NCBI GenBank assembly: GCA_973895155.1
Contig: OZ316898.1
Location: 10,935,187-10,999,186 of the forward strand
From: Marsupella aquatica
Taxonomy: Eukaryota > Plantae > Marchantiophyta
Reading direction: 5' to 3'
Length of the DNA: 64,000 bases
A program made the translations under genes and the position numbers. The notes beneath the pieces were generated by a model. It was not told where the DNA came from. It saw only the letters and a list, made by a program, of their open reading frames with translations, and made no database searches. How positions within the stretch are numbered: position 1 is the stretch's first letter; each line of letters starts with the position of its first letter. Shown here piece after piece: positions 9,063-39,241 of this stretch.

Positions 9063-9140
9063 TTAACAATGCTCAATTAGTCTGTTGAAGAATCCATCCG
9101 AGCAGAGCAATCTGGCAAAGCAGGCACTGTGGCGAGGTGG

Positions 9141-15361: not shown

Positions 15362-15434
15362 TATACAATAGAAATTTGTCTAAGTATTATTAGAGCATCT
15401 CCAGCTGTGTCTTTAAGGATAACCAGCTCTACAC

Positions 15435-17270: not shown

Positions 17271-17335
17271 AACCCCAATTTAAGGAAAACCGAACTTTGG
17301 AAATTCCAAAAATCACTAAATATTATTATTTTAAT
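17271..17335 (+). repeat. Left TIR of the giant transposon
   Basis: First 17 bp are identical to the reverse complement of the right end; similarity continues through ctaaatattatta. Confidence 0.9.
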
Positions 17336-17537
17336 AAAAAGGGGGCGACATGACGCGTGGCTGCGCGTGAAACCCTGAAAATGACTGCAACGCCACATTT
17401 TAACCAATCCAACTTGACGGGACCAAGAGACATGCTCACGCGAATAATAATAATAGAGAAATAAATCTTTGAGATCCTTTATATATGATAACCAGTATAT
17501 AAGGAGTTTACAAATAGTTTCTAGAACGACATACAAA

Positions 17538-18266
17538 TTAATCTGATCTCATGCCGACTATTATTTTGGAAGCGTCCAAAATTGGGCGTCTATTAAATTG
17601 CTTTACTAGATATCTATCTCCATGCCTCTGAATCACAGGGTCTTCCCATAGAGTATGATTATAATCATAATCTTTAAAAATAGATTTAACTGACCAATCT
17701 GGATAATCTCTTCCATTGGCAATGACAAGCGGCTCACAAGAGTTTGCTAGCTTGCTAAGATACGGAATCAGCAAGTTAATCAGGAAACTGTCGTCGACCG
17801 ACCCAAAATATTTGGGCGGAAATAATGATCCAACAACAGGATCTAAACAAGCATGAAATGCATCGGATTCGATAAGCATTATATTTTGCTGCAGATACGC
17901 CTTCGTATAAATTCCAACCTTCTCAAAATACTTCAAAAATATCCGCTTATTTGATGTCACCCCATCGCATAAGTAACAATGAGACTGATCCCAAATATAC
18001 TTAAATGAGGCCATTTCCATCGCAGTAAAAATAGATGCTAAAATCTGATCTAAAAGGTTCTTCCCAAGAGAGGACCAAATCCCTACATCGAAATTCTCAA
18101 AACAGAATCTCAAGAATTCGTGAAGATGAGGCCTTGGAAAAATGTATATATTCCCAATCCAAATTCCAATTGAGACCGCCATCAATCGGGAATGCGGTGC
18201 AGTGTAACAGAGTAGATGCTCCACGTCTAAAACTATGAGTCCATTTTCTCTGCTGCAATGAATCTC
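17538..18266 (-). CDS. FCP1/SCP/NIF-like HAD phosphatase domain 3 (probably the last exon of the cargo gene)
   Basis: LIVLDVEHLL...PRPHLHEFLRFCFENFDVGIWSS...WDQSHC...FLKYFEKV; acceptor tttctctacag precedes it; the DxDxT motif is degenerate (DVE). Confidence 0.8.
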   Translation of the reverse strand, partial: EIHCSRENGLIVLDVEHLLCYTAPHSRLMAVSIGIWIGNIYIFPRPHLHEFLRFCFENFDVGIWSSLGKNLLDQILASIFTAMEMASFKYIWDQSHCYLCDGVTSNKRIFLKYFEKVGIYTKAYLQQNIMLIESDAFHACLDPVVGSLFPPKYFGSVDDSFLINLLIPYLSKLANSCEPLVIANGRDYPDWSVKSIFKDYDYNHTLWEDPVIQRHGDRYLVKQFNRRPILDASKIIVGMRSD

Positions 18267-18352
18267 CTGTAGAGAAACACAAGAAGATGCATGAGCCCGT
18301 ATGGATGTAGTCACGCAAATGGTCGCGTCACATATTACAGAGAAAACATCCT

Positions 18353-19060
18353 CTACACTCTGGCCATTGATAAGTGACGTCTGTTGAAGTGCTTGATAAG
18401 AACTTGATCCGCATGTCTCTGCACGTACAGATGCTCCCATATATCCTCGTTCAGATCCCAATCTTGATGTAGATTTCTAATCGACCAGATGGGATAATCA
18501 AACTTGTTAGCGAACGCAAGACAAAGCCCTGAATTTGATAGCTTTCGTAAATATGGAATGAGGTCATCCCTCAAAAAGATATCATCCAACGATCCTTGAA
18601 ACGACTTAGCGAACAATAATCCGCATACAGCTGTCTGGCATGTATGGGAAGGACAGGCATCAATCTGGATTATATTCTCTGGTCGATAATCTTGAAACAT
18701 ATCACGTAGTCTCTCGATAGATTTGAAGACAACAGTCTTATAATTTTTCTTCACATAACCAAGATTCCAGCAATGATCCCGCGTGAACACATATATCAGC
18801 TGCGACAGGTCGGTGCTCGACAACACTTCTGAAAGTATCTGATAAACTAGTTTATCGTCGAGAATAGACCAGACCATCACATCAAAATGATCATAACAGA
18901 ATTTTATAAGATCATGAAGATGCGGCCTCGGAACGACACATAGAGATCTGATACGAATTCCGGGTGCCGACTTGAGCTGAGGAGTATATTTTGAAACAGA
19001 GCACAGGAAGTTTTCCAGTCCTAAAACTAGAAGTTGACGCGACCTGCTCCACTTAGACAC
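18353..19060 (-). CDS. FCP1/SCP/NIF-like HAD domain 2 (no catalytic Asp; frameshift at its 3' end)
   Basis: LLVLGLEN...PRPHLHDLIKFCYDHFDVMVWS...VFKSIERL...ENIIQID; acceptor tttatttacag at 19061; clearly paralogous to domain 3. Confidence 0.8.
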   Translation of the reverse strand: MSKWSRSRQLLVLGLENFLCSVSKYTPQLKSAPGIRIRSLCVVPRPHLHDLIKFCYDHFDVMVWSILDDKLVYQILSEVLSSTDLSQLIYVFTRDHCWNLGYVKKNYKTVVFKSIERLRDMFQDYRPENIIQIDACPSHTCQTAVCGLLFAKSFQGSLDDIFLRDDLIPYLRKLSNSGLCLAFANKFDYPIWSIRNLHQDWDLNEDIWEHLYVQRHADQVLIKHFNRRHLSMARV

Positions 19061-19185
19061 CTGTAAATAAACAATTCGATTCTCATATTATGCAATTGCA
19101 AACAACCACGCGACTGGGCGCGTCACTCCCAAAAGTTCAATTTCAATCAATTTATAAATAATAATTGATAATAAACAATAAACGT

Positions 19186-20091
19186 TTACTTATTGGACTT
19201 ATCCCGGGCTTCTATAGCACGGTCTTTTTCGGCAGATAAGTATTTCATAAATTTGTCAAACTTTTCTAAATGGTCTTTATTCCCCTGATTACGAATGATC
19301 ACGTTTCTCCTCCAAAGATTCGTCTTATCAATATAATCTTTCTCAAGATTTTCTTGAGAGAACGTTGGAATCCCATATCCACTAAGGAGCTCGCGGAATG
19401 TCAACTTGTCAATTGACATGTCGCATAGATATGGATATAGTTTCTTTCTAAAAAATAGGTCATCATCGAGCCCAGAATATGCATCGGGATACAACGATGA
19501 ATAGAAGTCATTAAGGCTCGTCTTATATGCAGCGTCATCGATAAGAATGACATTCTCGATGTTGTAATCTTTAATATCGGCGGCAATGTCCGAGAGATAT
19601 TTGACAAATAAAGGGATGTCATTATTATTCTTCCCAATAAGTCGAGTTGATTCTTGTCCCCATATAAATTTAATACGTTTCAAAACTTTGGGTCGAAGTA
19701 TCAGCCTTACACAAGATAGAATATTCCGTTTGAACATGCACGACCAGATCGCAATGTCGTATAGATCTGCCACCTTCTCAAGAAATTCTATTAAATCAAG
19801 CCTTGGATAGATAACCTTGTGCATCTGTCTCACACCCCTTGACCGAATGGGCATCCCAAGGCTGATCTTCTCTGACCAGATAAGTACCCGATTCAGATCA
19901 AAAATTACAAGTCTCTTTTGAACCGGTGACTTCTTTGCCGATGGATTAGGCGCCATCTGTACCTGTGATTTTTGTGCCGCAGGGTTTGGAGAATGTACTA
20001 GAACGGTCTGTTTGTTTCCCGCCTCCGGACGATCACCGGACTTCCGGACTGGTGCCTTCGATACTCGATCAGGGGGTTTCGGGATAGGCTT
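19186..20091 (-). CDS. Exon encoding FCP1/SCP-like HAD domain 1
   Basis: LVIFDLNRVLI...PRLDLIEFL...YDIAIWS...WGQE...FVKYL...NVILIDDAAYK; in-frame acceptor at 20092. Confidence 0.85.
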   Translation of the reverse strand, partial: KPIPKPPDRVSKAPVRKSGDRPEAGNKQTVLVHSPNPAAQKSQVQMAPNPSAKKSPVQKRLVIFDLNRVLIWSEKISLGMPIRSRGVRQMHKVIYPRLDLIEFLEKVADLYDIAIWSCMFKRNILSCVRLILRPKVLKRIKFIWGQESTRLIGKNNNDIPLFVKYLSDIAADIKDYNIENVILIDDAAYKTSLNDFYSSLYPDAYSGLDDDLFFRKKLYPYLCDMSIDKLTFRELLSGYGIPTFSQENLEKDYIDKTNLWRRNVIIRNQGNKDHLEKFDKFMKYLSAEKDRAIEARDKSNK

Positions 20092-23000
20092 CTGTAAAAC
20101 ATTAAGAAATGAAAATAAGTTTATAACGCGAACGGTCGCGTGACTACAAAGAGAGACACTGAAATGAAGTGTATTACCTGTACAAGACGGTCGTTCAGTG
20201 TTGGAATTCCGCCGGAAATGTCAATCATAGCAGCACGGATCCCGGTAACTAGGTTACTTGCGGACATCGACTTGCTGAAGTCCATGTCAAATAACGACAA
20301 GACTATCTCCCTATGGAATTTCTCAATTTGATCCGCGGCAAAATTAATTCCGTTTCCTTGACACAAGCACTTGGCGTATCTCAAGATAAACACACCACAA
20401 TTGTGGCCGTCACTCTGGTGAGGAATATCATTCCGATATATCCGTTCCCAACCTGAGAGATCCAAGTTGACACCACTTCTCCAGCCAATTTCGTCGGCGT
20501 AGTACTTCCCAACAATATCTAGCACCCCAGGATTTTGTCGATTATGAACTAGAGAATCTAGGTACTCCAGCCGTTTCTCCTTCGGATACAAGACTACCAA
20601 TGACCAATGTTCTTTCACAGCATTGTGTACTGGAAAGACCAGTTTCTCGTATTCACTGATTTTTAGCGGAAACTCCTTTGTCCAAGCTGCTCTCTCCTCG
20701 TCAAAAATGGTAGGATCCATGGAGAGAAGCTCAAAATGGTGTGTTTGGAAGAATTTGACAAGGTCTGACTTTCCAACTCTATCGAGAATCAGTTCGAGAA
20801 AACTCAAATAAGCGTTAATTATATCATCGGTGAGCAACTCGCGCGGTCTCAAACACATCATATGTTTCCTCTTGATCGAGTGTTGTAAGAACTTGGTCAA
20901 TAGCTCTTCCATATCCTTAGAAGGATCAAGGCATTGATCTATTCGACTAGCCAAATTTTCAAAAAACTGCAAAAAACAGAGATTTCAGAACGCCTTCAAA
21001 TAACGTACTGAGGTTGTAGCCTAAGGGTTGTAGCCTCAGAAAACAGAAATAATAACAGATCAATAATAAAATAATGACGTCTATAATAGAAACTTTAAGC
21101 TTATAGCTTGCGAATGACCTTTGGATTGGGTGGATCCGGCCTTTTCGCAGCTGATCTCTTGGGTGCCTCAATCGCAACAACATCCTTCAGCCCTCCTCGA
21201 GACCGCAGTGATCGCTCCACCGGACCAGTTTGCGAAGGTTGGAGCGATGAGGCGGGAAGACCTTCAAATGGTTGTGGCATTTGATTCAAATATTCCACAA
21301 TCTGGGAATCCGATTCCAAAATATCCGGTGCCACAATTTCTGCGCGAGTCACCTCTGCAATATATCGGGGTCGAGACCACGAACCCGGTCGCGTCAAGTC
21401 AGCTGTTAGTCTCTTAACGACTTGAGCCGAGTCTGGTGCCAAAAACGTTCCCAGGTCTTGCACTCGATTCTCGGAAAAGCGGACATTATTGATGATTGTC
21501 TCCATTCTGGATGCAGTGGCAGTCTTCTCCTCGGTAATCAAAAGACCCTTCCAATATTGCAAAGCAAGGACTGCCTGGACTCGGAGCTGCTCCGGTGAAT
21601 ATTTATTCCAATCATCCAACGACACCGTACTTAAGGGTGGATCGTTAAATTCAAACTCCGGGCGAAGAAAATAGTCTAATATTTTCTTCTTAACTGCAAC
21701 TGAGGGTGAAGAAGGCTTCTTCAAATTCAGCCTTATTTTCGGTAGACGTTGTGCCTCAGGAATAAGCGAAAGATCCTTGGCCCTCTCGGCCTCCTTCCTC
21801 GCTGCCTCCAGTCTTGCGGCTTCTTCTCTCTCCAGTCTTGCGGAATCCACCTTTTCTGCCTCCAACTTCTTCGCCTCCACCCTCTCCGGTCTTGCGGTCT
21901 CGTCCGCCATCCTCTCGGCCAGAAGCCTCTCAGCCGCCTCACTCTCCGCCTTGGCCCTATTTTCCTCTGTCACTAAAAGGACTCTCGCAGCCTCCGCTTT
22001 CTCAGCCTGGGCTTTCTCCGCCTGGGCTTTCTCAGCCTGGGCTTTCTCCGCATGGGCTTTCTCAGCCTGGGCTTTCTCAGCCTGGGCTTTCTCGGCCTCC
22101 GCTTTCTCAGCCTGGGCTTTCTCGGCCTCCGCTTTCTCAGCCTGGGCTTTCTCGGCCTCCGCTTTCTCAGCCTGGGCTTTCTCGGCCTCCGCTTTCTCAG
22201 CCTGGGCTTTCTCGGCATCCGCTTTCTCCGCCTGGGCTTTCTCGGCCTCCGCTTTCTCAGCCTCGGCTTTCTCCTTCTTCTTCGCGGCAGTTGCTTTTCT
22301 AGCTGCTGCCTTTTTCTTCTTAACCTCCTTCTTTTGAAGCTGCTCTTGCCGGGCCGCCTCTTGTCGGGCCGCCTTCTCCTGCCGGGCCGCCTCCTTCTTT
22401 TGAAGCTCCTCTTGCCGGGCCGCCTCCTGCCGGGCCGCTTCCTTCTTTTGAAGCTCCTCTTGCCGGGCCGCCTCCTGCCGGGCCTCCTCCAGCCTGGCCT
22501 CCTCCTGCCGGGCCGCCTCGTGCTGGGCCGCCTCGTGCCGGGCCGCCTCCTCTCTGGCCTCCTCCTTCCGGGCCGCCTCCTCTTGGTCCACCTCATGTCG
22601 AGGCTCCTGTGTGGCCTCTTCATCAGAGTCCTCAGCGTCCTCAGAACCCTCCATCTCCTCGTCCTCTTCATCAGCGTCCTCAGCGTCCTTCATCTCCTCT
22701 CTGTCACTCTCTTCATCTCCTCTATTGTCGGAATCTCCGACGTCGTTCTGCGTATCGGTCATCCACTCTGGATCTTGGTCATTGACATCCCCATCCATGT
22801 CACCTTCCGCGTCACCTTCCCCCTCACCATCCGCATCACCATTGCTCCCTGCATCCTCAACATTGAAGCCGCAGTCGACTTGATCTGAATAAAATCAGAT
22901 CATTTGATAAGAATGACTCACGCGTGAAAAGAAATGTTATGAATGTCCACGCGCATGTTCGCATGACGCAATAAAAAGTAAGAGGTTTCAAAAGTAACTT

Positions 23001-26000
23001 ACCTTGGATTGGCCCACTAGGGTACTCCGTTGGTCGAATGTACAATCGATCGGAATCTTCAGAGAGTGCATACTCTTGCAATAATTGATTACAAATATTA
23101 TCAGGGATATGTTGTTCGTGGAGGACATCCAAAACATCAGCCCTGAGAGCAGTTACGGATGGACGGTACTTCATTAATTTATCTATACATTTTTCTATAC
23201 TAGCCCGTACTGGGTCAATCAATGACAGCGTTGTATCAATTGTTGCCGTGGTGTGTTGCAAGAAACAAGACAACTCCCTATGCGTTGCCACAGGGCAGTA
23301 ATATTTTACATTGGATCCAGCATCCTGTAAAAAAAGCCGAAATTAGTTCACAATATTAATTGAGAATATAATAATCTACATAATCTTAAAATCAAAACCC
23401 CAAAATATAAATCTCAAAACTTACCATTAAGCACTGGATCAAGTTCGTTCCCTCACCGAAGCATATAGCCCATTCCCCACATTGGACGAATTGACTAACA
23501 ATACTTTCAAAGAATGGAAGTATCTTTTCTGGGGAAGGTGTCGTGAACTCGTCGCTCTCTTCAAAATTGGATATTTTTTCAATCTGATATTTGGAGACCA
23601 ATTGGAACTCAAGGGCTTGTGGATCGCCCATTGTGCTGAAGGCCAAGCTGTGAAAAGCGTAGGTTACAATAAGCTTCTTCTCCTTCGGCCTCTTCTGAAT
23701 ATAATGGCTATCGACAGCAACGTAGTGTGTGTACTTCCCTAATTCCCGTTTGATTAAGTAAGACTCAATGGGAGAGGCTACAATAATAACCACATGGTGT
23801 GGTTTTGCCCCTATCTCGCTAGTAGCACGAAATAACCCCTCATAGAATGAGCAATTTGGCGGACGCAAATCTCCCATTGATGAGGGATCAAAATAAATCA
23901 AGCTCACAAGGTTCTTGTCTTCACGTATGATACAGTCTGCAAACCCAGCATTTTGTATATCCTGCAGGGATCGCAATTTCAGCCTCTCATCGACCGGCCG
24001 CACTAGTTGGTTTCCTTGACTATCAACTGATTTCTGTATTCCTTCCACCAACCTATAGAATATAGGGTCGATCTCCTTCAACAAATTATCATTACTAATA
24101 TTTACATTTAAGCACTTCTTCAGATAACCACTCAACGCATCTCTCAACTGCTTCAGCACCATCTTGTCGAGCTTAAAGCGATCAATCATTCCTTTGACCC
24201 GCAATTTCCGCGCTGAATCTGTCAGACTTTTCAACTCCGTTCGGGTGGATGTTTCCCCGTTGAGTTTACTCAATAATAAAATCTCAAACTCAACTTTTGT
24301 CTTCTTCTTTATACAGAATTGCTCCAAACTCATGTTGGTTGTTGACAACACTGGAGCCTCAAAGGACTTCCTCGCCTTCCCAGATTTCACTTTGATGCTT
24401 CGGTTTTTGAGTATAGACAGTCTTCCGCTCAACATATATTCCGCTGCCTTTCGAAGAACCGAGTCTGAGCACCCTTGACAAGAATGGAACGTCTTCTTCA
24501 GAAGATGATAAGCACACGGATTATCCGCAATTTTGACGGCGTCCCTCTGTAAAATTCCGTTGTAAATTACAAGCTCTCCTGTCCTTGATAGTTCGTAGAC
24601 CTCCATCCACTTCTTGAATGTTTCGTCCTCCATTGTAAAGAGAAACGGAGCCAATTCTCCAAATTTCATCATTTCGTTCTTCCCCATTTGAGCCCATGGG
24701 CAGACAAAACTCGTAGCTCTCATCAATACCTGAAAAACAATGGAAACATGACAATTCTAAGCTTGATGCGACCGTTCGCATGACAAAAGTTTATACGATA
24801 ATGTGATCGAAGAGGGTTATTTATATACCTTCCAATTTGGATGACGATAATATGATCCAGGCTGCCCAAATGAGTTCCAGATATTACGACACTGTCGTAC
24901 AATGGTGAGAAACTGTCCTTCTTCCATTGATGTTTGATGACAATGGTTCAGAGCTTTCGATAATCCCATCAAATGAACATTATTGTCGTTGTTGAGCGTT
25001 GCCCAAAACATTACAGCTTCTATAGTACCGCAAGCGTCTCGTACAACTTGGCTGACTTTGTCGTCCTCTCTCAGCAATTTGTACGCCATTATTGTGTGCT
25101 GGCCTCCGAGTATCCAGAAATGACTGGTCATAATGTCCTCCTCCTTTGGCGATGAATCGTAGGGCGTCCCATTGTAGTCGGGATCTCTGTCGGCCTCCGA
25201 CTGAACCCACTTCATAGGGACTAAAAAGCAGCATCGCTTCTCGAACTTTATAGCCGAATGAGAGAGGAGTGAATTCTTTAGCCTATCTGTGTAATCCTGA
25301 TTCCACTCTCGGCACTTGATGTGGTCCGGTGCAAGATGACAACGTGATGTCTCAACAAAAAATGACTTGCTGTTAAATATATTCACAGCACTATATTCTT
25401 TGAGGAAAGAATCAAACAGAGCCCCGACATTCGCTGAGGTAATTACTTTCGGAAGATTCTCCGCCGAGTATACTTCAACCTTGCTCACTGGCGGGGCCTT
25501 TCCCAAGCGAAATCCCTGGTTGAAAGGAACTCTCTGGAACTCAAGTACGTCAATAATGTATTGACAAATCAAATCTCCCATTGATGCCTCGGGAGGATAT
25601 CCCACACTAGTAACCTTTTCCAAGGCGTGCCTTGCACCTAGAAGATCATCGATTCTGGGCTGATTGAAGGTTACATATTGCGTTCGATCCAAACAAATGC
25701 TTATTTTGTCTTCCTGCTGGTCGTTGCTGACTAGCAGAACCAATCCCTCTGTACACTCTTTAACTTTCATGTTCTTCTCAAAGAAACACCCAAGAATTTT
25801 TGATCTCTCCAAAACTGTAGCTTTATCATTTTTTGCCACCACAAGACGGACAGCCCCATTGCGAACGACTATTCCAAAATCGGATATCTCAGTCGATTCA
25901 AAGAGATGGATACTCTTTGTCTCCGTTGTTCTCTCTCTGATTGACTTTCCTCGATATGCAAGTATGGATGTCTCCGCGGGAGTCATTTTTGTCTTGGCTT

Positions 26001-26061
26001 TCTTTCGAGAAGCAGCTTTAGACGAGTCTCTTTTCCACTTTGAGGTTCCGGTAGGATCCAT
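19186..26061 (-). CDS. Spliced multidomain cargo gene of ~2,106 aa: ParB/Srx-like + degenerate amino-MTase-like + acidic/coiled-coil repeats + Ulp1 protease + FCP1-like domain 1. Exons: 26061-24829, 24729-23425, 23324-23003, 22884-21119, 20966-20178, 20091-19186
   Basis: All five predicted GT-AG introns (99, 100, 118, 152 and 86 nt, AT-rich) join the ORFs in frame; the donor at 21118 (AAG|GTCATT) is weak, so the gene could be split there. Confidence 0.7.
20178..20966 (-). CDS. Exon encoding a Ulp1/SENP (peptidase C48) SUMO-protease domain with an intact triad
   Basis: LTDDIINAYL, PVHNAVKEHWSLVV (His), EYLDSL (Asp), PHQSDGHNCGVF (Gln/Cys). Confidence 0.92.
21985..22582 (-). repeat. Coding minisatellites (AEKAQ/AEKAE)n and (EAARQ)n within cargo exon 4
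   Basis: 15-bp units such as gctttctcagcctgg and ccgggccgcctcctg. Confidence 0.95.
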
Positions 26062-26136
26062 TCTAAAATAGACAAATATTGAAAGTTAAACGTTTATTAT
26101 AAAATACTAACACGCGCATGGTCGCGTCCTGCCGAA

Positions 26137-26667
26137 TTACATTTTAGGAACATTTATCCTGACCCAATCTTCTCGCTCATCTTCATCTAACCAAAACCAA
26201 AGGTTCCTAAACGTGTCAAGTTCAGATCCTTCAAATCCACCCAGAATGTCCAGCGGCGGGAGAGTTCTGATGGATTCTGTAAATCTTAATGCTACACTCC
26301 GTGAAGTCAAATGCCTTCGAAGCGATTCATATCCTGGTCTATCAGTGAAGTCGTAAGCTACCAAGGTGACCGTCGCCTATGTACTACTATAAGTAACTAT
26401 GTGGCACCACTTCTTACTGACTGTTCGAATGGCGATCAAGTCCATGACCCAATTTTTAATCGCAGTATCCGACAAATTCCCAAGACAGTGGAAAAACTCT
26501 TTGACTAATGGCCAAATATATTTCTCGACAATATCGTCCGGAAGACCGGGTATCAGGTCTTCAGCTTGACTCCATATCATGTTTCGGTTCATAACCTTTG
26601 CACGTGCAATGCGCTCCATCATCATTTGACGATGAGATTTTTGATTCATGTCAAAGGACTGCAGCAT
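26137..26667 (-). pseudogene. F-box-only ORF 3 with an in-frame premature TAG at 26377-79
   Basis: DLIPGLPDDIVEKYIWP...IRTVSKKWCHIV; the frame continues after the stop, which aligns with Trp in paralogue 2. Confidence 0.75.
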
Positions 26668-26701
26668 AATATGGAAAAGATTAAGAACAAGAACCTATCC
26701 A

Positions 26702-27268
26702 TTAAGAACTGGGACCACCAAGATTCTGAGAAAATCTACCAAACCTTTCGATTAGGACATCTCGTTCTTCCTCATCTAAATTCTCATATTTGTTCGTAAA
26801 CAATGCGATTTCGTCAGAAGTAGTAGTCCCAAGAACAGATATTTCTGGAAGCATAGAAATATCCTGTCGAATAACTCGACAGACTGAGTCAAACTCCAAC
26901 TCCTCAGTTTCAGGTATGTCGTAAAGAGCATCATTTGCGACATCGACAATCCGGTTTGCTTGTTTGAGGATAGCCCATAACCTTGTATTTGTAACTAGAA
27001 AGTTCCACTTCTTGCTACAAGCTCCAAGCTGAATAAGGTCTCGGACCCTATCGATAACCAAATCGTTATCGAGGTGTCGATATCCACGCAATCTTTCAAT
27101 TGAAATAAAGTGTTCGTAGAGTATTGGCCAAATGTTTGAAATGACCAAAACATCTGGTATTCCTCCAATGAGACTAGAGGAGGTTTCATCCAGCGTATCT
27201 CATATTGTTTTCTGTTTCTTTTCATGAGATGAAAGGAAATCTCGAGCCTCATTCAAAAGTTGGTTCAT
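26702..27268 (-). pseudogene. F-box-only ORF 2 with an in-frame premature TGA near its 5' end
   Basis: MNQLLNEAR...KTI*DTLDETSSSLIGGIPDVLVISNIWP...LGACSKKWNFLV. Confidence 0.7.
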
Positions 27269-27333
27269 CCTGCTTTTATCATATCACAAAACATTGTTAG
27301 AAGATATACGACGCGCTTCGTCACGTAAGTTAA

Positions 27334-27885: not shown

Positions 27886-28029
27886 GACTCTTTTCAGCCA
27901 AATGATATATCCCAGAGATTATTTTCACGCGACTGGTCGCGTCTACAAATCAGAATGCATAAACAATTCTTTGAGAGACTGATTTTTTCGGGTCACAACG
28001 TGAAATCATAAATGTTGCTTCGTCCTCTA

Positions 28030-29710
28030 ATAGAACCAGTCAATGAGAGAGCAACCTCAGACGCGACTGGTCGCGTCAACTGAACCTAAACAACTATATC
28101 CACTGAACCTTCTGTGGAGATTTGGATATGGTACGCGCTCAGTAAATCTATCCAGTTTCCTTCTCACACGACTGGTCGCGTCAACTGGTCCTAAAAGGAA
28201 CCCTACCTCCTCTAACAGAACCAGTCAATGAGAGATCTACGTCAGACGTGACTAGTCACGTCAACTGGTCCTAAAAGGAACCTTACCTCCTCTAACAGAG
28301 CCAGTCAATGAGAGATCTACGTCAGACGTGACTAGTCACGTCAACTGGTCCTAAAAGGAACCTTAACTCCTCTAACAGAACCAGTCAATGAGAGAGCAAC
28401 CTCAGACGCGACTGGTCGCGTCAACTGAACCTAAACAACTATATCCACTGAACCTTCCTTGTGGAGATTTGGATATGGTACGCGCTCAGTAAATCTATCC
28501 AGTTTCCTTCTCACACGCGACTGGTCGTATCAACTGGTCCTAAAAGGAATCTTACCTCCTCTAACAGAACCAGTCAATGAGAGAGCAACCTCAAACGCGA
28601 CTGGTCGCGTCAACTGAACCTAAACAACTATATCCACTGAACCTTCTGTGGAGATTTGGATATGGTACGCGCTCAGTAAATCTATCCAGTTTCCTTCTCA
28701 CACGCGACTGGTCGCGTCAACTGGTCCTAAAAGGAACCCTACCTCCTCTAACAGAACCAGTCAATGAGAGATCTACCTCAGACGCAGCTGGTCGTGTCAA
28801 CTGAACCTAAACAACTATATCCACTAAACCTTCTGTGGAGATTTGGATATGGTACGCGCTCAGTAAATCTATCCAGTTTCCTTCTCACACGCGACTGGTC
28901 GCGTCAACTGGTCCTAAAAGGAACCTTACCTCCTCTAACAGAACCAGTCAATGAGAGAACAACCTCAGACGCGACTGGTCGCGTCAACTGAACCTAAACA
29001 ACTATATCCACTAAACCTTCCTTGTGGAGATTTGGATATGGTACGCGCTCAGTAAATCTATCCAGTTTCCTTCTCACACGCGACTGGTCGTATCAACTGG
29101 TCCTAAAAGGAACCTTACCTCCTCTAACAGAACCAGTCAATGAGAGAGCAACCTCAAACGCGACTGGTCGCGTCAACTGAACCTAAACAACTATATCCAC
29201 TGAACCTTCTGTGGAGATTTGGATATGGTACGCGCTCAGTAAATCTATCCAGTTTCCTTCTCACACGCGACTGGTCGCGTCAACTGGTCCTAAAAGGAAC
29301 CCTACCTCCTCTAACAGAACCAGTCAATGAGAGATCTACCTCAGACGCAGCTGGTCGCGTCAACTGAACCTAAACAACTATATCCACTAAACCTTCTGTG
29401 GAGATTTGGATATGGTACGCGCTCAGTAAATCTATCCAGTTTCCTTCTCACACGCGACTGGTCGCGTCAACTGGTCCTAAAAGGAACCTTACCTCCTCTA
29501 ACAGAACCAGTCAATGAGAGAACAACCTCAGACGCGACTGGTCGCGTCAACTGAACCTAAACAACTATATCCACTAAACCTTCTGTGGAGATTTGGATAT
29601 GGTACGCGCTCAGTAAATCTATCCAGTTTCCTTCTCACACGCGACTGGTCGCGTTAACTGGTCCTAAAAGGAACCTCACAGTATTTTCACGCGACTGGTC
29701 GCGTCAACAG
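28030..29710. repeat. Tandem array A: 185-189-bp units, two 80-bp subunits and a 563-bp higher-order repeat, with about 20 copies of ACGCGACTGGTCGCGT or close variants
   Basis: The ATG of gtcaatgagag falls at 28043, 28228, 28308, 28388, 28577, 28764, 28951, 29140, 29327 and 29514. Confidence 0.97.
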
Positions 29711-32204
29711 CTCAAACAACTTTTGGACAATAGGATAATACAGTGATACAACTGTGATTACTGACCCGTACGGACAAAGAAATCCGAGGAAGCATAATCA
29801 TTCATTTGTATTCATTCATGAACTTTACAATAATTCAGATGTTTGAGCTCTGTCATTGTGAAACTATTATATATTAGAAGTTTAGAGAATGATCCAGCTA
29901 AGATGATTCAATTTAGCAGTCTACTAGTTGTATTCGTCAATTAAAGGATTCAGTGTAATGAGATTCACATAACATGAGAGTTTATATGATTAAATTCACA
30001 GCATGCAAGTTTGTAATGACTTACTTAAGACGATTCAGGTTGTATTTTAATTAGTGAGTTTGTATGATTCACACATATTTGAGTTTACAAACAAACCGCA
30101 TTATGAAAACTGTGCTTAACAATCAAGAGAAATTTTAGCAAACCACAATCAACACCAGCAGAAAATGTAGAAATTACACCTGAATTCTGAAAAATTGATG
30201 TAATCGTCTGAGAGATTGACGTCCAAGCACTTGAACACCTTGCTGCGGCATTCCAGAAAGTAAATATAAGATTGAAGATATTAATATGCTAAGCAACAAC
30301 AACACAACTTCTATACTTCTATACATAGAGCTTCGCTGCCACCAATTGAATAACATGTGCTAAGGAGCTCATTATGTCGAGTTAAAAAGACTCTTTGAGA
30401 AGTACAATCAAAGCTGTGGATAGGCAAACTGAGCATGAATAAAAGTGCACTAAACCTGAAGATTCAAAGAGGTGAAACAAACCTGAATGCTGAATGGAAG
30501 GAGCTAAAACAAGCTGCCAAAAAGTAGTTTGAGCTGCTGAAACACGTTGATCGAGCTGATATGAGCTTAAAATTGGCTGACACGAGCTGATACAAGCACT
30601 CCCAAAAAGCTAGCTGCAACGAACTAGCAAACTAGAAGTGAATACGAGCTGTAAATGCGAGCTGCAATGCACCAACGAGCTCCTGGTCAAAACGATGGAT
30701 AACTACTAAGAGCTGCAACACGCCGACAAGCACCTGACCACAACGAACGAGTTGCACGAACGAGTTGCAGGAGCGAGAGCGAGAGCGACGAGAGCAGGCG
30801 CGCAAAAGTCTAGGGAGCGAGAAACAACAACAATGAACTCGAGACCGTGGGCGCCGACACTAAGGAAGGACTAATTAGGGTATTGTTTTAGCATAACCCT
30901 AATAACAGCCTAGCGACGAGAAGGTTCCAGATGATCTCCGTACACTCCACCATCGACTGAACAAACTATGCAATCGTGAAAAAAAGATTACCGGATTCCT
31001 TTTGATTTTCCGTACTAAAGGAGATTTCTATTTGATGGCCAATTTGAAATTTAAACCGGTAATTATGCAACTACGAAAGATTGTTAGTGGGGACCCCCGG
31101 ATCCATATCTTCACTATATCTGCCAATTCAAATCCAAAATGTGAACGAACGACAACTTTCTCACGATCGTTCCATCACGTAGTGGAGGCAAACTTCAAAA
31201 TCATTCCATTTTGGTAGTGGAGACCGTCGGATCCGGATCCGTACTCCACTCTCTATCTTGCCAATTCAAAGCCTTACTCTAAACAACGTAAAACGATTCT
31301 CACGGTCGGGGAGAACCGATATTCAAAATCAATCCTATACAATGATTCTCACGACTGGAGACTCAACCAATTTTCAAAATCAAAATCGAGTCCAGATGAA
31401 CACATCCTCCATGGAGTCAATAGACTGATCTCATTGCTCACGGATCATTCTTCATTTTCAGTTTCTCCTGACCAGGATACTAGCTGGGCTCTCAGCGGAG
31501 GCTGATCCAAGGCACATTTGAGGTGGAGCAGATTGGATCATTCGACTATTCCAGTCGGAGGCGGAGCTCATTCAAGCAACGCTGGCGCAGTTCTTGTTGT
31601 ATCACCTTCAATCTTGGGGAGAGCACATCCGATCAAGCGGGAGAGTTGCGACGAAGCGAGACGACAAACATTTAGAACCTCCATAGTCTGCCTCATTCAT
31701 CGAAGCATTCTAGCGGACCAACAAAGAGCGGCTATTCTGAAATCACAGTCTGGTCAAGGATTTTGATCTTGATACGATCAACAAGTTGTCATTCTCTGGT
31801 GGTGGGATTCGATCACGATACTCAAGGAAATTGGAGTTCGAAGGAGGAGGCTTAGTTGGCTGGGATGAGGAGGCTACGCTGGAAGGAAGAGGCTTGGCTG
31901 GGAGGAGGGTTTCCGCCAACATCGAAGGGTTGCCGCCAACATTGCTGAGACCACATGCAACTGAATAACTTGTAAGTATCAATCAGCATTAATTCCACAA
32001 TAAATGAGGAGAGTAGTTGCCTTAAATCACGCATTCAATGCATGAATTGAGTCAATGAAGTTATGGTCCAATTTTTCACTCCGATTTTGATCAATCCGTG
32101 TTTCAAGTCCAATACAGAAGCAATGTATCAGAAGTACTAGTAAAGGATCCGAATGAATTCTCTAGTCTAAAATTGTATGGCGTACGCGTATAGTTGTCCA
32201 TACA

Positions 32205-33155
32205 TTTTGCTATTGTTTATTGTAGTCGACGGCCTAGCAAAACGAAACGTAATCGAGGTCCATTTTTCAGATCTTCCTGATCTCAACTTGTTAGTAGGAT
32301 GACCTGTTTTTTTGTTACACATGCAGTTCGTCACGCGCACAGTCGCGTGAACCAATGTATCTCGTGTCTTTTGATATTGTTTATTGTAGTCGACAGCCTA
32401 GCAAATTGGCCAGAAATCTATTTTAAAACCAACGTCTTCGTTTCATCACGCGCACGGTCGCGTTAATGTTTTAGAGGTCAACGAAAGTTCTGCACTCTTA
32501 GACGTAATCGCCCTTTATTTCAGAGATCTTCCTGATCTCAACTTGTTAGTAGGATGACCTGTTTTTTGGTTACACATGTAGTTCGTCACAGTCGCGTGAA
32601 CCAATTTATCTCGTGTCTTTTGATAATGTTTATTGTAGTCGAAAGCCTAGAGAATTGGCCAGAAATCTATTTTGAAACCGAGTTCTGATTCACGCGACCG
32701 GTCGCGTTAATGTTTTAGAGGTCAGCGAAAGCTCTGCACTCTTAGACGTAATCGCCCTTTATTTCTCAGATCTTTCTGATCTCAACTTGTTAGTAGGATG
32801 ACCTATTTTTTGGGTTACACATGTAGTTCATCACGCGCACAGTCACGTGAACCAATTTATCTTGATATTGTTTATTGTAGTCGACTGCCCAGCGAATTGG
32901 CCAGAAATATATTTTAAAACTGAGGTCTTTGTTTCATCACGCGCCCGGTCGCGTTAATGTTTTAGAGGTCAGCGAAAGCTCTGCACTCTTAGACGTAATC
33001 GCCCTTTATTTCTCAGATCTGCCTGATCTCAACTTGTTAGTAGGATGATCTGTTTTTGGTTACACATGTAGTTCATCACGCGCACAGTCGCGTGAACCAA
33101 TTTATCTCAGGTCTTTTTGATATTGTTTATTGTAGTCGACAGCCTAGCGAATTGT
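32205..33155. repeat. Tandem array B: about 3.7 copies of a ~245-255-bp unit, each with two ACGCG-N6-CGCGT-type sites
   Basis: gatctcaacttgttagtaggatga at 32279, 32534, 32778 and 33025. Confidence 0.95.
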
Positions 33156-33356
33156 CAGTCAGAGGAATCTCGATTTTTCCTTGATTGCAAAAATGGTTAC
33201 ATCGATCCCGAAGAACTTCGGATGTGGAATCCATATCCACTAGCACTATCCAGGAATTTAAGCTACACAGTATCTATAACAAGTTCTAACTTGAACTACT
33301 CTTGAATCTGTAGTTCTAATCTTCGACTACTCAAAATATTGTTGACTTCGATCGAG

Positions 33357-33899
33357 TCAGTCATTCCAAGATGAAGGCATCCACTCATCGGTGTCTGGTG
33401 TGGATTCCCTTGAATCCAGAAATTCTTCCTTTGCCCAAGTCCTAACGTCCATAGATTTTCTCGGCTTGCTCTTTCTGTAATACAAATCAGAATCTTTGTT
33501 CATCTCTAATTGCCTTTTCTTCGGTGCGTCCACTTTCCTTGCCTCCTTCTTGACTGTCTTAGCGTCTGCTGCTGCTTCCCCCGAAATGGATTCGACGCAT
33601 GCTCTGGCCTTCAACTTCTCCCCCCTCGAAACGGATTCCACGAGGGCTTTGCCCTTTAACTTCTCCCCTGATGCCATCTTTGTAGTCATCTCTGTCGGAT
33701 TGGTCTCCATCTGATCTTCCATCAACAAATGTGACGAACAATGTCGTCTCTCACAAAACATTTGACCCGATTTAGTCACCGTAAACATTATATTACATCG
33801 CTGACACATTCTGTAAGGAGTACCCCGAATTCGATACGTCAAACCTTCTGAATCGTCCATCGAAACATCCTCATTCTTCGAGCTCAGCGGAGTAGTCAT
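33357..33899 (-). CDS. Hypothetical 180-aa cargo protein with a putative Zn-binding CxxC-x14-CxxxHC motif, a basic region and an acidic/Trp tail
   Basis: Intact ATG-to-stop ORF; MCQRCNIMFTVTKSGQMFCERRHC; short internal duplication (SGEKLKGKALVES / SRGEKLKARACVES). Confidence 0.6.
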   Translation of the reverse strand: MTTPLSSKNEDVSMDDSEGLTYRIRGTPYRMCQRCNIMFTVTKSGQMFCERRHCSSHLLMEDQMETNPTEMTTKMASGEKLKGKALVESVSRGEKLKARACVESISGEAAADAKTVKKEARKVDAPKKRQLEMNKDSDLYYRKSKPRKSMDVRTWAKEEFLDSRESTPDTDEWMPSSWND

Positions 33900-34169
33900 C
33901 GCCCTTCAAACAAGAGATGTTGACCGAGACTAAGAATTGGGAGAGAGCTGATGTGCGAATAGATTATCCAGTAGCCAGAAAGTGGAATGCGTGGGGGAAT
34001 GAGCAATAGAGATCATCTCAATGCTTTATACTGTTTAGTCTCCACTAGCCATTGTACATAGTGGTTTCTAGAAGAGGGTGCGCGTTTGACTGGCGCGTAT
34101 TAGAATTGGTGGGAAGTTCAGTTGTCTGGTGTCCACTCATTGGTAAACTGGTACTGTCCACCCATTTTT

Positions 34170-34935
34170 CCTGAGTGGAGTTGAAATGATTGTTCGTAAT
34201 CGATTGTAGTCGTTCTCATTCACTTGAAATGACTGACGGACCATGCATTATCTTTACCGGTATGTGTGATGCCTTTAGATCCGTAATTGTATCTTCTTGT
34301 CTCGCGCGCAATCGTATCTTACTTATGAAGTACCAATTACGAGCTAGAGTTTGGGCCTAGCCTTCTAGCTTCTACGTCGTAGACCCTGTACCCTCTGACT
34401 AAGGTCACGCGACATGCCTTTAGATCCGTAATTGTATCTTCCTATCTCACGCGCAATCGTATCTTACTTATGAAGTACCAAGTACGAGCTAGAGTTTGGG
34501 CCTAGCCTTCTAGCTTCTACGTCGTAGACCCTGTTATCCCTACACCCTCTGACTAAGGTCACGCGACTAGTCGCGTGCAGGGCAGTGCATTGACTACATT
34601 CTGCCTACTTATTGACGGTTGTGACAGGACAATGCAGTTCACAGACGTTTTACTGGCGCTTATTAGCACTACTGTCCTCAGTAGTTACTGACTGTCCACT
34701 CATTTGTTCTGAGTGGATGTGAAATGATTGATCGTAATCGATTTGGTCATTCTCATTCATTTGACATGACTGACGGACCATGCATAGTCTGTTGCCCGGT
34801 CTGTTGCCGGTATGTGTGGTACCTCTAGGGTCACGCGACCAGTCGCGTGCAGCGCAGTGCATTGACTACATTCTGCTTATTGACCAACGTGAGAGGACAG
34901 TGCAGTGAAATTGATGGACGTGACAGGACTATACG
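34170..34935. repeat. Mosaic of short duplications in the divergent region between the cargo and the transposase
   Basis: atgcctttagatccgtaattg at 34269 and 34414; gactgacggaccatgcat at 34231 and 34768; tcacgcgac(t/c)agtcgcgtgcag at 34559 and 34831. Confidence 0.85.
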
Positions 34936-35056
34936 CTTACAGTGATATTCTCTGATGTGCAGGATCATAATTATTATGGTGACATCGACAGTCTGGATCA
35001 GGGAAGGCGGATAAGTAATTATAGGCATACGTGAGAAACAGGTTGGAAAAGGTCGC

Positions 35057-38000
35057 GTGATAAGTCTTGATCCTTCCAGGGTTTGTCACAATGTTCCTTT
35101 TGGGGCGGACAGAGGAGTTCTTCTTTTGGAGGAAGTTTTTGACGAGACCATTCTATGCGAAGATGGCGAACTTTTGAAGGACATGATTGGGGGTTACCTT
35201 GTATGGGAAAGGAATCAGCTTTTTCGAGCTCCCATGGAATCGGAGGATGTGTTTGGCACTGTTGGTGATGATCAAGATCCAGTCAATCAAAATTCTGATG
35301 GGAACAACCATAATGAGAGTCGGTCTGGTGTGGAAGTAGTTTTACCAAAGGCCTTGTGGATGGGCATGCCTGTAAAGGTGGTGGATGAGAACAAGTTGAT
35401 ATTTGCAGTGGCAACTATACATGTTCTAGATCCTATAGTCAAGCTTGGGGATGTCACCCTTGGGAATACACATGTGGGAATTCTGATCAACGATTTTGTC
35501 GAGGGAGCTACCATAGATCATCTGAAGCATAGAGATTGCTTAAAAGCTTGGTCGATGGACCAACTCATTGCCAAGGATGGCAACTTGTTGTCTTTCCACA
35601 ACATCAGGCAAGCTGTGGGAGGGAACACATCTCCAACAAGTGGCAAGCGGTCCTACGTCCATAAAAGTAGGAAAAGAAAGAGTCCATCTTCCCAGACATC
35701 TAGAAGAGACACATCTTTGGCACGTCAAGATGTGTTGTTGATAAACACTAAGGACTGTTGTAGTGAACATTGTTGCCAATATTTGGACCGCAACTTGGCT
35801 ATGGCAATTAGGCAAAAGTGGTGGTCAAAATCTTTTGCGGAGCGCAAGGAGGAGGAAATCAAGGCTATTAAAAATACAATACACTTAGGTACTGGAGAAA
35901 GGATTCTAGCAGTGGAGGGCAAAGTATTGTGCTTGGAGGCATGGAGAATCATTCATTCAAGAGGAAAGACTCAATTTTATGCCTTGAAGAAGACTGTGAT
36001 GGCTGGAATGAACATAGGTACCCATGGTAATGCTGGAAAAAAGGCGTATGTCCGAGAAAGTATCTCAAGCGTTCATGTCAATGAAAGAGATTATTGAGGA
36101 GGCAGCTGATCATCATCCAGCCAAGTTGAGAACCATGGTAGATAATACAAGGATGGTTTTGAGGGAATTGCCAACAAATCTTACTTGGGAGAATATTAGA
36201 AACAGGGTTAATGTTGTCAACCAGGAGGCTGGTCTTCCTCCAATTTCCCAACCCACCTTGAGTCATCTACATCAGATGTATTTCAGGGAGTTCTCACGTC
36301 ACAAAAAGGGTAACAACTTTTCAAAGTGTACAACTTGTAGTGAGTTGCTTCAACGGAAAGCAAACCTTACAGGAGCTAAGGAAGAGTTAGAGGGCCTAAG
36401 GCGTGACGAGGAGGAACATCACCAAGACCACACACAACAAAGAATGTGCTATCATACCTGGAGATATGAGTCCATCCATCGTCCAAAGGAAGTGTTATGC
36501 CTTATTCATGATAAGATGGATCATTCAAAGATAGCTCTCCCAAGAATGCCCTTCAATCCTAAGCATGTGGATGGTGCCCAAAAGTTCCCAATTACTGTCA
36601 CTGGTATCCTTACTCATGGTCATGGTCCCAAGGCCATAGCCCAATATCATGTTGGAGTGTGGCCAGGTGATGTCAACATCACTATTGGGTCAATTGATTC
36701 AATACTAAGGATGTTGGAAAACCCAAATCCAATGATCAAATCACTTGTGGAGGGGCCAGACTCGACAAGTCTTTTTAAAGACCTCCTTTTTGGGAGAGCA
36801 GATATCTTGGAGGCAAGTGTCCTTAGAGCATTTGAGGATGACATTGCCTACATCTCAAGCCTAGGTACTTTACTCACAATCCTTTAATTTATTATTATTT
36901 AATAATATAAGCTCACACACACTGACACTCTACTTTGTGTAGTTGTTGCTCCTCCTAGCCAAGGTTTCATTAATAGGGTTTAAACCCTAAACCCTAAATT
37001 GGGGTTTAGGGTCTGACTAGGGTTTTGTTTAAAAGCATTCTGAGATTGTTACATTGTGATGCAGCACCTGAGGCACCAAAGTTCAGGCCCCTTCCACGAG
37101 TATTGAAGCTACAACTGGATAATTGTGCCTCAGACAACAAGAACAGATATATGATGGCTTATTTGTCATTGTTGACGGCAAGGGAGGTGTTTGAAGAGGT
37201 TCATCTTGGTTTTATGGTGGTTGGGCATACTCATGAGGACGTTGACGGTATGTTCGGGCATTTTTCAGAGTCTATGATGCATAACCCCACATACTCATTG
37301 CCTAAGTTAATGTCCTTGTTCATGAGAGCAAGGACACCCAATGCAGTCCCACATTTTCTACAGGAGGTCCCAGATTTCAAAAACTACTTAGCTCCATTCA
37401 TGTTGAAGGGCCCTGAGGCATTGGTGGGGCATTTAAAACCCAGGCTGTTTAGGTTCTATGTTCGTCATGATAGTATGCCATGCTTCCAATACAAAATGAA
37501 GTCAACTGATCAGGGATGGTTACCCAAGGAAGGTATTGAAATGTGGTCATGGAAAGATGACAAAAGTCCTCACATCCCAATTGGGGTGCCCAAACGGCTA
37601 CCAATGATGGAGTTGAAAATGCTTCCTGAAGTGCTGACAGGGTTGAAGAAGCATGTGTCATTCTTTGAGTTTATTCTAAAGCGAACAAAAGAGGAAGAAC
37701 CAAAGCGACGTTGGACAACTCTCATCAATTATTGGAATGGCATTGTAGATACTCTACAGGGTGAGCAGGTGCAATATGAACCTGAAGGTGCACACAACTT
37801 GGAATACGGGTTTTGGCCTTTATCAATATGGAGAGAGCACGTTCCACCAGAATATCGAAATGTGGTATGTGAGTTGGAGGCAACAGTGGATTATGTGGGA
37901 CCAGCAAAAGATAAACCTCCTGAGAGTTTTAACCCTAGGGTTGATGTTGTGAAGGGCTGTTATGTGTTGGTACGGCCGGACGACTCAGACCTGGATGTTT

Positions 38001-38353
38001 ATCCCGTCCATATGGGGTTAGTTGTTACAGATGTGGTAGAAGGACCAGTGAATGAACAAAACCTTCTTACTCATGTATGTGGCGTTGAGTGGTTTAGACC
38101 ATTTATGGCAAAGAAGCAACGTGGTCAATCAGACTGGCAGCCAAGAGAGCGGTGGGCAGATTCTTGGGATAAGAAATGGGAACGTGATCCATCTCCAATA
38201 TACAAGGAAGCTGAGACAATAGATGTTTCCTCTGCCTTGTGGTGTTTCAAAGCACGCAAAGGACCAATGACAGGGCTGGTAGGAATTCCAAAGAATGTTG
38301 CTGTCAAGGCAAGAGACTATCTCTTGACATGCATAGCAAGTGACAAATCCTAG
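35057..38353 (+). CDS. Sola-like (DUF7869-type) DDD transposase with one frameshift in an A-run (~36037-42) and an intron at 36865-37064; the true start is probably further upstream
   Basis: DCCSEHCC, THGNAG, FSKCTTC, LIHDKMD, LQLDNCASDNKN and FMVVGHTHEDVDGMFG; the phase-1 intron joins the ORFs in frame; two N-terminal TnpA/DUF8039-like repeats. Confidence 0.88.
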
Positions 38354-38444
38354 ACAGTAATGAAGCATGTAGTTTAGCATACAGTTTAAAAGGCAACTCA
38401 GAATAGTAGTAGCCAGAGAACTCGAGTTTAGACAAGTCTTATCG

Positions 38445-39025
38445 TCTAAGTTAGTTAGTTGGTTAGTTTATTTAAGATATAATATTAGTTAGTGGGGCCT
38501 TAGTTTGGTGATATTAAGGCATGATATTATTGACATTCAAATGAATGTCCAGTAGACATTGTAATATACAACAATCCTATTAATAAATAATAATTATAGT
38601 TACACCCTCAAGTGAACTCAACTTTCAATGATTTCTGATTTTATATGGTTCCATGCCTGATTGAGTCAAAGCAATAGAAACTAACTAATTAAAGGGTGAT
38701 ACTATAATTGTAGGTCACGCACCCTGGTGCGTGTCAATCTTTTTTGTATTCAACCCTATAGTAATTAAATAGACAAGTTAGTTAGTTGGTTAGTTTATTT
38801 AAGATATAATATTAGTTAGTGGGCCCTTAGTTTGGTGATATTAAGGCATGATATGATTGACATTCAAATGAATGTCCAGTAGACATTGTAATATACAACA
38901 ATCCTATTAATTGTTGTAAAGAAACTAATTAATTAAAGGGTGATACTTACTATGATTGTAGGTCACGCACCCTGGTGCGTGTCAATCTTTTTTGTATTCA
39001 ACCCTATAATAATTAAATAGACAAT
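38445..39025. repeat. Two-copy ~325-bp duplication downstream of the transposase; each copy has a decayed palindrome ACGCA-N6-TGCGT
   Basis: aagttagttagttggttagtttt at 38448 and a near-identical copy at 38775; tcacgcaccctggtgcgtg at 38715 and 38963. Confidence 0.9.
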
Positions 39026-39175
39026 TGAAACAATGAATGATAGTTTAATTAAGGATTTGTGCATGGATCAAGAGGTACTTGATGTCATTTAGTGATGCAT
39101 TGTTATAAAGATCTTGCAACAAAACATTTGAAGTTTTTGACTATCCCACCAAATGTTAAAGAGGTTGATCATTCA

Positions 39176-39241
39176 TTAACTAATAATATTTAGATAAAAT
39201 TGGAATTAATCTAATACTTCAGTATTCCTTAAATTGGGGTT
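39176..39241 (-). repeat. Right TIR of the giant transposon
   Basis: ...ttcagtattccttaaattggggtt followed by the GGTG TSD. Confidence 0.9.

Follow-up and report, generated by a model that had tools for sequence, protein, structure and literature searches.

The locus at positions 17271-39241 of a 64,000-nt window from the liverwort Marsupella aquatica (the window being the whole stretch of DNA analysed) raises the question of whether 21,971 bp of sequence can be a single transposon, to which family such a transposon belongs, and whether the many genes lying opposite its transposase are part of the family or were picked up once. The segment is read here as a structurally intact liverwort Sola1 cut-and-paste transposon that has landed in a decayed Copia element and carries a family-level module of accessory genes on the opposite strand, together with palindromes private to the element. 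We hold this reading with a probability of roughly 80%.

Element boundaries and insertion site

The full length of the element, 21,971 bp, is defined at both ends to the base. The left end at 17271 reads AACCCCAATTTAAGGAA, and the right end at 39241 is its exact reverse complement. End pairing and a 17-mer search delimit a left terminal inverted repeat (TIR) at 17271-17294 (plus strand) and a right TIR at 39218-39241 (minus strand), which are perfect over 17 nt and 92% identical over 24 nt, with the terminus 5'-AAC. Further inward, a left subterminal inverted repeat (17302-17331) pairs with 39178-39207 at 80%. Direct reading of the sequence gives the target-site duplication (TSD) as GGTG at 17267-17270 and again at 39242-39245. 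The terminal 17-mer has exact matches in the window at the two element ends only; when it is searched with up to three mismatches, 0.24 chance matches are expected in the window. Minus-strand translation of the right flank gives ...WIVDSGA...SLHCRLAH, continued on the left by HLHVDGLRHFLS; the empty site rebuilt with one TSD copy is LHCRLAHLHVDGL, inside a decayed Copia protease/pre-integrase region. The segment 17271-39241 is taken to be a complete, well-preserved giant Sola1 element, and its unambiguous limits and empty site make it a good reference copy.

An earlier note on this DNA, made from the sequence alone, had claimed matching TIRs, a GGTG TSD and a rebuilt Copia empty site, all of which are borne out to the base. 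Its view of the 21,971 bp as a single TIR-bounded unit is supported by the perfect 17-bp ends, the GGTG duplication and the restored Copia pol frame, and its estimate of about 3.4 kb of transposase, with the remainder mostly divergent cargo and arrays, agrees with transposase exons spanning 3.3 kb, minus-strand cargo open reading frames (ORFs) of approximately 10.3 kb, and approximately 7.2 kb of arrays and other non-coding sequence. Neither the element nor the Copia that hosts it recurs in the window, no internal long terminal repeats (LTRs) or second TIR pair pointing to a nested element were found inside 17271-39241, and an Rfam search gave no match. A TIR-like match at 36990-37006 (14 of 17 positions) was considered as a second end and rejected, its similarity stopping at the edges of a telomere-repeat-like palindrome. 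This palindrome (TAGGGTTTAAACCCTA followed by AACCCTAAATTGGGGTTTAGGGT) occupies 36974-37012, within the intron that separates exons 2 and 3 of the transposase.

Transposase and Sola1 assignment

The transposase is encoded on the plus strand by three exons without internal stops, collinear with full-length homologues of 1,101-1,250 aa. Exon 1 (35057-36097) holds the N-terminal region with a CCSEHCC motif; exon 2 (36024-36887), placed by alignment to homologues and to published Sola1 rows, holds the first catalytic block, LIHDKMDH; and exon 3 (37025-38353) holds a DUF7869 domain (Pfam, E 1e-36) with the second block, LDNCASDNKN, and the third, GHTHEDVD. As reference, the RNase-H-core rows of Sola1-1_AP, Sola2-1_HM and Sola3-1_HM were taken from the supplement of Majorek et al. 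2014, and the curated Sola1-1_Ec32 transposase from the supplement of the Ectocarpus transposable element (TE) paper (PMC12477816). Read by eye, the window blocks LIHDKMDH, LDNCASDNKNRY and VVGHTHEDVD match the blocks FDLEK, SDNCGGQNRNRF and RGHT of Sola1-1_AP, and the blocks MDGAN, VDNTVAENKNNY and MVGHTHIQID of Sola1-1_Ec32 are closer to them than those of Sola1-1_AP, whereas the Sola2 and Sola3 rows show no match to the window blocks. The second Asp and GHT are 35 residues apart in the window, in Sola1-1_Ec32 and in 11 of the 12 homologues examined, and 34 in Sola1-1_AP by manual count of its alignment row. The termini read AACCCC...GGGGTT in the window element and AACCG...CGGTT in the curated Sola1-1_Ec32, with a 4-bp TSD in both. 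Because the catalytic blocks, their spacing, the AAC termini and the 4-bp TSD match published Sola1, the element is filed under Sola1, and as judged from these features its transposase is a Sola1-type DDD (triple-aspartate) enzyme. The prediction of a Sola-type transposase with a 4-bp TSD is thereby upheld and narrowed to Sola1.

The transposase family comprises 2,951 clusters at E <=0.001, among them numerous proteins of Riccia and Calypogeia and others from amphioxus and bivalves. DUF7869 was named in no paper in the literature search. In Riccia sorocarpa (cluster of P0169), at least 16 nearly identical DUF7869 proteins have been entered as ordinary genes in the annotation, and, as judged from their sequences, DUF7869 genes in liverwort gene sets such as that of Riccia are Sola1 transposases, which is of practical relevance for annotation. 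A bivalve homologue from Pinctada imbricata (P0167) bears the UniRef name 'OTU domain-containing protein', a hint that animal Sola1 elements may be associated with a further cysteine protease.

Accessory genes on the opposite strand

A long accessory gene on the minus strand probably runs from a ParB-like exon to a Ulp1 protease exon. It begins with a 414-aa N-terminal exon (24817-26061), examined by motif, profile and Atlas searches, whose motif FWILGGQHT (FWLLDGQHT in the related contig L002), preceded by a conserved basic segment, fits the ParB/Srx/DndB signature. A 99-nt GT-AG intron in phase 0 (24730-24828) joins this exon to a conserved 444-aa exon (23392-24726), which occupies the position held by the methylase domain in related accessory genes and is recognised by its conservation in L002. 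There follow a conserved 144-aa exon (22857-23291), 38% identical to L002 and bounded by consensus introns on both sides, a 565-aa low-complexity charged ORF with coding repeats of 15/30 and 48 nt (21101-22798), and a Ulp1/Peptidase_C48 domain (20121-20972; PF02902, E 7e-18). Consensus GT-AG introns of 99, 100 and 118 nt link the 414-aa, 444-aa, 144-aa and low-complexity exons in frame, and the Ulp1 exon is preceded by an acceptor with a good pyrimidine tract; no clear donor for this last junction was found. Because of the in-frame consensus introns and the acceptor before Ulp1, the ORFs from the 414-aa exon to Ulp1 are probably one long spliced gene. At 21846-22840 the low-complexity exon is built of tandem repeats, with units of 15/30 nt and 48 nt, that stay in frame, number up to 19 copies and encode a charged stretch rich in Lys, Glu and Ala; placed between Ulp1 and the conserved exons, it is probably a linker or coiled coil.

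The cargo exons were searched one by one, and protein searches with them returned only short Logan contigs, probably since length limits drop long fused products. For the 414-aa exon, the Atlas language-model search gave a lead to DUF3723 and ParB_N clusters at 0.88-0.93 (DUF3723 0.92, ParB_N 0.88), its L002 homologue has a weak PHROG ParB-like match (E 0.074), and Pfam, PDB, NCBIfam and PHROGs gave no match for the window exon itself; ParB-likeness of this exon in the window copy is put forward as plausible. For the 444-aa exon, searches of Pfam, PDB, PHROGs and NCBIfam yielded neither a methylase domain nor any other match, and a metagenome scan with this exon found no relatives, so that a methylase in the window copy is unproven. 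In the Ulp1 domain, the His, Asp, Gln and Cys catalytic residues are conserved (HWSL, LDS, Q.DG and CG, in the window and in L002), suggesting an active-looking SUMO protease.

Downstream of this gene lie three minus-strand NIF/FCP1-like ORFs identified by Pfam (PF03031) and motif inspection, at 17538-18461 (E 1e-14), 18353-19060 (E 4e-11) and 19186-19956 (E 4e-9). The DxDxT catalytic motif of FCP1/SCP phosphatases is absent from all three, being replaced by D-V-E-H-L, G-L-E-N-F and D-L-N-R-V, respectively, and the domains are probably not active phosphatases. Because the paralogues share merely 23-38% identity, the triplication appears to be old. Three further minus-strand ORFs (26377-26667, 26702-27148 and 27334-27885) are short, paralogous and F-box-like, with sub-threshold Pfam matches that reach at best 15.7-17.8 bits (E 0.003-0.014) over half of the profile, against cut-offs of 20.5 and 24.3. 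A 180-aa minus-strand ORF at 33357-33899, taken from the ORF list, gave no match in the searches and may not be a gene. The proposal that the cargo regulates SUMO, ubiquitin, phosphorylation and possibly DNA methylation is less secure than the earlier note has it: the domain content is clear for Ulp1, with its intact triad; for phosphorylation the NIF fold is present but the DxDxT motif is not, the F-box matches fall short of threshold, and no methylase was detected.

A palindrome private to the element

The palindrome ACGCGACNNGTCGCGT, searched with up to two mismatches, has 30 matches in the window, all at 18313-34848 and none in the other 42 kb, against 0.01 expected by chance. Most copies lie in two arrays found by repeat and motif scans: array A (27927-29704), composed of 80-, 107- and 187-bp higher-order repeats with the palindrome ACGCGACTGGTCGCGT, and array B (32205-33154), composed of approximately 245-bp repeats with variants of the array A palindrome. 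Single copies stand 42-57 nt upstream of the start of the ORF at 27885, 51 nt upstream of the ATG at 26061, and just upstream of two NIF-like ORFs, and a degenerate copy lies within the 99-nt intron that follows the ParB-like exon. The transposase ORF has its copies 220-500 nt upstream, where a duplicated 55-nt block (34553-34879) places perfect palindromes at 34561 and 34833. Variant palindromes occur in both subterminal regions; on the right, a repeat scan revealed duplicated blocks of approximately 250-330 bp, 97-99% identical, at 38448-39024, whose two palindromes, CACGCACC-CT-GGTGCGTG and GACATTCA-AA-TGAATGTC (two copies each), are distinct from the principal palindrome. By its distribution the palindrome links cargo, arrays and transposase as parts of a single unit.

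Relatives and the cargo as a family trait

Whether the accessory genes belong to the family was examined with relatives from other genomes and samples. An automated scan of all loci for TIRs with TSDs was noisy, palindromic tetranucleotides in long inverted repeats mimicking TSDs, and the terminus of one locus, L084, is ambiguous. In L002, a contig of 9.4 kb from a different sample, the 414-aa exon, 444-aa exon, 144-aa exon and Ulp1 follow one another as in the window, at 38-58% identity. A TIR-bounded Riccia element (L086) of 9.6 kb has a 33-nt TIR, the TSD TTTG and the terminus AACAAC; its gene divergent from the transposase matches DNA methyltransferase families (Pfam E 0.002, PHROG E 2e-8), and a palindrome of its own, CCATGA-N3-TCATGG, is present 28 times. 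One element recovered from three metagenomes (L056/57/58) is TIR-bounded at 11.3 kb, with the TSD ATAT, the terminus AACAC, a NIF-like ORF on the strand opposite the transposase, and arrays of TTTGGTGGCCACCAAA. In a second Riccia locus (L087), a NIF fragment lies approximately 10 kb upstream of the transposase, together with palindromes of its own. Apart from this NIF fragment, the Riccia accessory ORFs have no detectable similarity to the window cargo.

Common to several lineages, then, are NIF- or methylase-type accessory genes on the opposite strand, AAC termini together with a 4-bp TSD, and palindromes private to each lineage. The delimited, TIR-bounded relatives (L086 and L056/57/58) do carry opposite-strand genes rather than being copies devoid of cargo, in keeping with the earlier proposal of a gene-rich family with divergent cargo, and these sequence comparisons support cargo as a family trait rather than a one-off capture.

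Several features of the relatives may be recorded in their own right. L087 contains, at 3300-9230 and 15360-16090, two long palindromes, one centred on GGCACGGACGTGCC in hairpins of approximately 45 nt and the other centred on GGAACGGACGTTCC and found also downstream of the transposase. L029, a 3-kb contig, has eleven copies of CGGGTG-N2-CACCCG; seven perfect copies follow one another at an exact 47-nt spacing at 53-349, upstream of a 687-aa intronless transposase ORF, and three more lie downstream. The closest transposase (50-63% identity) is that of Calypogeia L001, in which CACGAACCATGGTTCGTG flanks the gene on either side and also lies within an intron. Directly downstream of this Sola1 transposase, a Ty3/Gypsy chromovirus-type retroelement with gag, RNase H, integrase and chromodomain occupies 12200-20700 of L001, and may have truncated the right end of the Sola1 element.

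Weighing of the alternatives

A number of observations weigh against the reading of an intact Sola1 transposon with a family-level module. The Sola1 assignment is drawn from motifs read by eye together with termini and TSD, and carries no E-value. ParB-likeness draws on a short motif, a language-model lead and the weak L002 match, no methylase domain is detectable in the window copy, and the AlphaFold models of the two conserved cargo exons are unusable (pLDDT, predicted local distance difference test score, of 48 for the 444-aa exon and 33 for the 414-aa exon). The exact cargo set of Ulp1, three NIF-like and three F-box-like ORFs is confirmed outside the window for Ulp1 only, in L002, whose gene body is devoid of repeated palindromes, and the readable 7.8 kb upstream of the Calypogeia L001 transposase shows no cargo. 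If the Sola label were wrong, the transposase would come from another superfamily with short TSDs, such as CMC/Chapaev, KDZ, Ginger or Academ; Pfam names the domain merely DUF7869, one relative has a faint precomputed Transposase_23 match, and the Sola comparison carries no Repbase statistics. We regard this as very improbable, since the three catalytic blocks and their spacing fit two published Sola1 sequences and not the Sola2 or Sola3 rows, and the termini and TSD length agree with the curated Sola1-1_Ec32.

It is also unlikely, though less decidedly so, that the Ulp1, NIF-like and F-box-like genes represent a one-off capture or nested insertion that made the 22-kb form a dead-end composite. 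The delimited relatives are just 9.6-11.3 kb long and the window holds no second copy, as such a composite would have it; however, the private palindrome lies between and upstream of the cargo ORFs over 18313-27942, the interior lacks LTRs or a second TIR pair, the order from the ParB-like exon to Ulp1 is kept in a contig from another sample, and the divergence of the NIF and F-box paralogues, 23-38% identical, implies that they are old and maintained. A different alternative concerns the palindromes, which might be binding sites of the transposase for end synapsis, comparable to those of Ac or En/Spm, or promoter elements read by a host factor, rather than sites of the ParB-like protein. This is possible, if doubtful: in L029 and L001, palindromes flank the transposase ORF on either side and the available sequence yielded no accessory gene, variant palindromes occupy both subterminal regions of the window element, and L002, which bears the ParB-like gene, has no repeated palindrome. 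On the other hand, the bulk of the copies lies in central arrays far from the ends, published algal elements pair ParB-like genes with adjoining inverted-repeat arrays (bioRxiv 10.1101/2025.02.11.637652), and the host-factor variant leaves the differences between the palindromes of different lineages unexplained.

Proposed mechanism and implications

For the intact Sola1 transposon preferred here, the following mechanism is proposed. The DDD transposase of approximately 1,100 aa would bind the inverted termini AAC...GTT, cut out the 22 kb as a whole and integrate it anew, duplicating 4 bp of the target. The accessory module would comprise three parts, namely the spliced gene from the ParB-like exon to Ulp1, the three diverged NIF/FCP1-like pseudo-phosphatase ORFs and the three weak F-box-like ORFs. 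A DNA-binding protein encoded by the element would recognise the approximately 30 private 16-bp palindromes, most likely the ParB-like protein and otherwise the N-terminal part of the transposase; the latter is the main rival binder, given that the transposase has palindromes on either side also in relatives without a visible accessory gene. Recognition of the palindrome would mark and co-regulate the element's own copies. Ulp1 and the NIF-like and F-box modules would target SUMO, RNA-polymerase C-terminal domain (CTD) or ubiquitin pathways of the host, favouring expression or escape from silencing. The sequence itself shows the ends with their TSD, a DDD transposase that looks intact, accessory genes that are conserved, and palindromes private to the element; we infer that all 22 kb move by cut and paste, that an element-encoded protein recognises the palindrome, and that the Ulp1, NIF-like and F-box-like proteins have roles in host pathways.

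A further-reaching possibility, which we offer tentatively, is that these parts form a system of self-recognition and host manipulation. The ParB-like protein would read a private palindrome that evolves together with each lineage of elements and nucleate on the arrays and the ORF-upstream regions, and the fused Ulp1, with its NIF- and F-box-like partners, would remodel local chromatin or RNA polymerase II control in such a way that only the element's own copies are expressed or protected from silencing. Such a system would parallel, in a eukaryotic transposon, the loading of ParB at parS in bacteria.

To our knowledge, giant DNA transposons with their own chromatin-directed genes have been described only recently, and so far from algae and fungi only. 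The window copy presents the same design in a land plant, with exact ends and an intact-looking transposase, and its cargo, with the ParB-like gene, Ulp1, three NIF-like and three F-box-like ORFs, is the largest among the relatives read. As a reference copy it would serve to define the family genome-wide, to address binding of the palindrome by the ParB-like protein, and to study the SUMO and CTD-phosphatase-like modules in relation to host silencing.

Comparison with known systems

Element-encoded proteins that bind short motifs repeated in their own element are represented by the VANC anti-silencing proteins of VANDAL elements (Mutator-like, Arabidopsis) and by TnpA of En/Spm. Such motifs vary from one related family to the next, and genes for Ulp1-like proteases are likewise found in plant relatives among the Mutator-like elements (MULEs). 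Neither the transposase superfamilies nor the DNA-binding proteins are related to those of the window element, and the likeness is one of function only.

Closer parallels exist among Sola elements themselves. The earlier note had held that described Sola elements are usually a few kb long with little beyond the transposase, a statement that has to be corrected: most measure 2-9 kb, some exceed 15 kb, and they are present in Physcomitrella (review PMC10741241), while giant Sola-1 elements are known from Ectocarpus, including the 21.5-kb Sola1-1_Ec32 (PMC12477816). Repbase Sola1 elements such as Sola1-1_AP and the Physcomitrella Sola1 share with the window element the DDD motifs, the 4-bp TSD, the TIRs, the presence in a bryophyte and, in some cases, a length above 15 kb (PMC10741241, PMC9033089). 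Sola1-1_Ec32 is the nearest in architecture. At 21.5 kb it compares with 22.0 kb in the window; both have a 4-bp TSD and AAC termini, and the catalytic blocks DN..(E/D)NKN.Y and MVGHTH...D are shared with identical spacing. In both, an accessory gene lies opposite the transposase and starts with a ParB-like region, which in the window copy is a plausible likeness; in Ectocarpus it encodes a 1,104-aa protein combining ParB-like and N4/N6 methylase parts (PMC12477816). The host is a brown alga in one case and a liverwort in the other, and the TIR of Sola1-1_Ec32 is 282 bp long, against approximately 24-60 bp in the window. The N4/N6 methylase domain recognisable in Sola1-1_Ec32 is undetectable in the window copy, and in the Ectocarpus text as read, neither palindrome arrays nor genes for Ulp1, NIF or F-box proteins are reported.

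Outside Sola, Plavaka elements of the red alga Bostrychia have tandem inverted-repeat arrays next to ParB-like accessory genes (bioRxiv 10.1101/2025.02.11.637652). Their ParB-like N-terminal domain is fused to a chromatin- or DNA-modifying module, and the authors propose that the protein binds and modifies its own transposon. The corresponding window gene, comprising 24817-26061 and the downstream exons, resembles the algal ParB-methylase accessory genes in lying within the TIRs, opposite the transposase and adjoining arrays. The Plavaka elements differ in their Plavaka/CACTA-like transposase, in the fusion of a 2-oxoglutarate (2OG) oxygenase rather than Ulp1 or a methylase-like region, and in their red-algal host. 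Against this background, the earlier note, which knew of no described Sola element with such an architecture, overstates the novelty, the core architecture being already catalogued in Sola1-1_Ec32 (PMC12477816), whereas the land-plant host, the enlarged cargo and the palindromes placed just upstream of several ORFs are new here.

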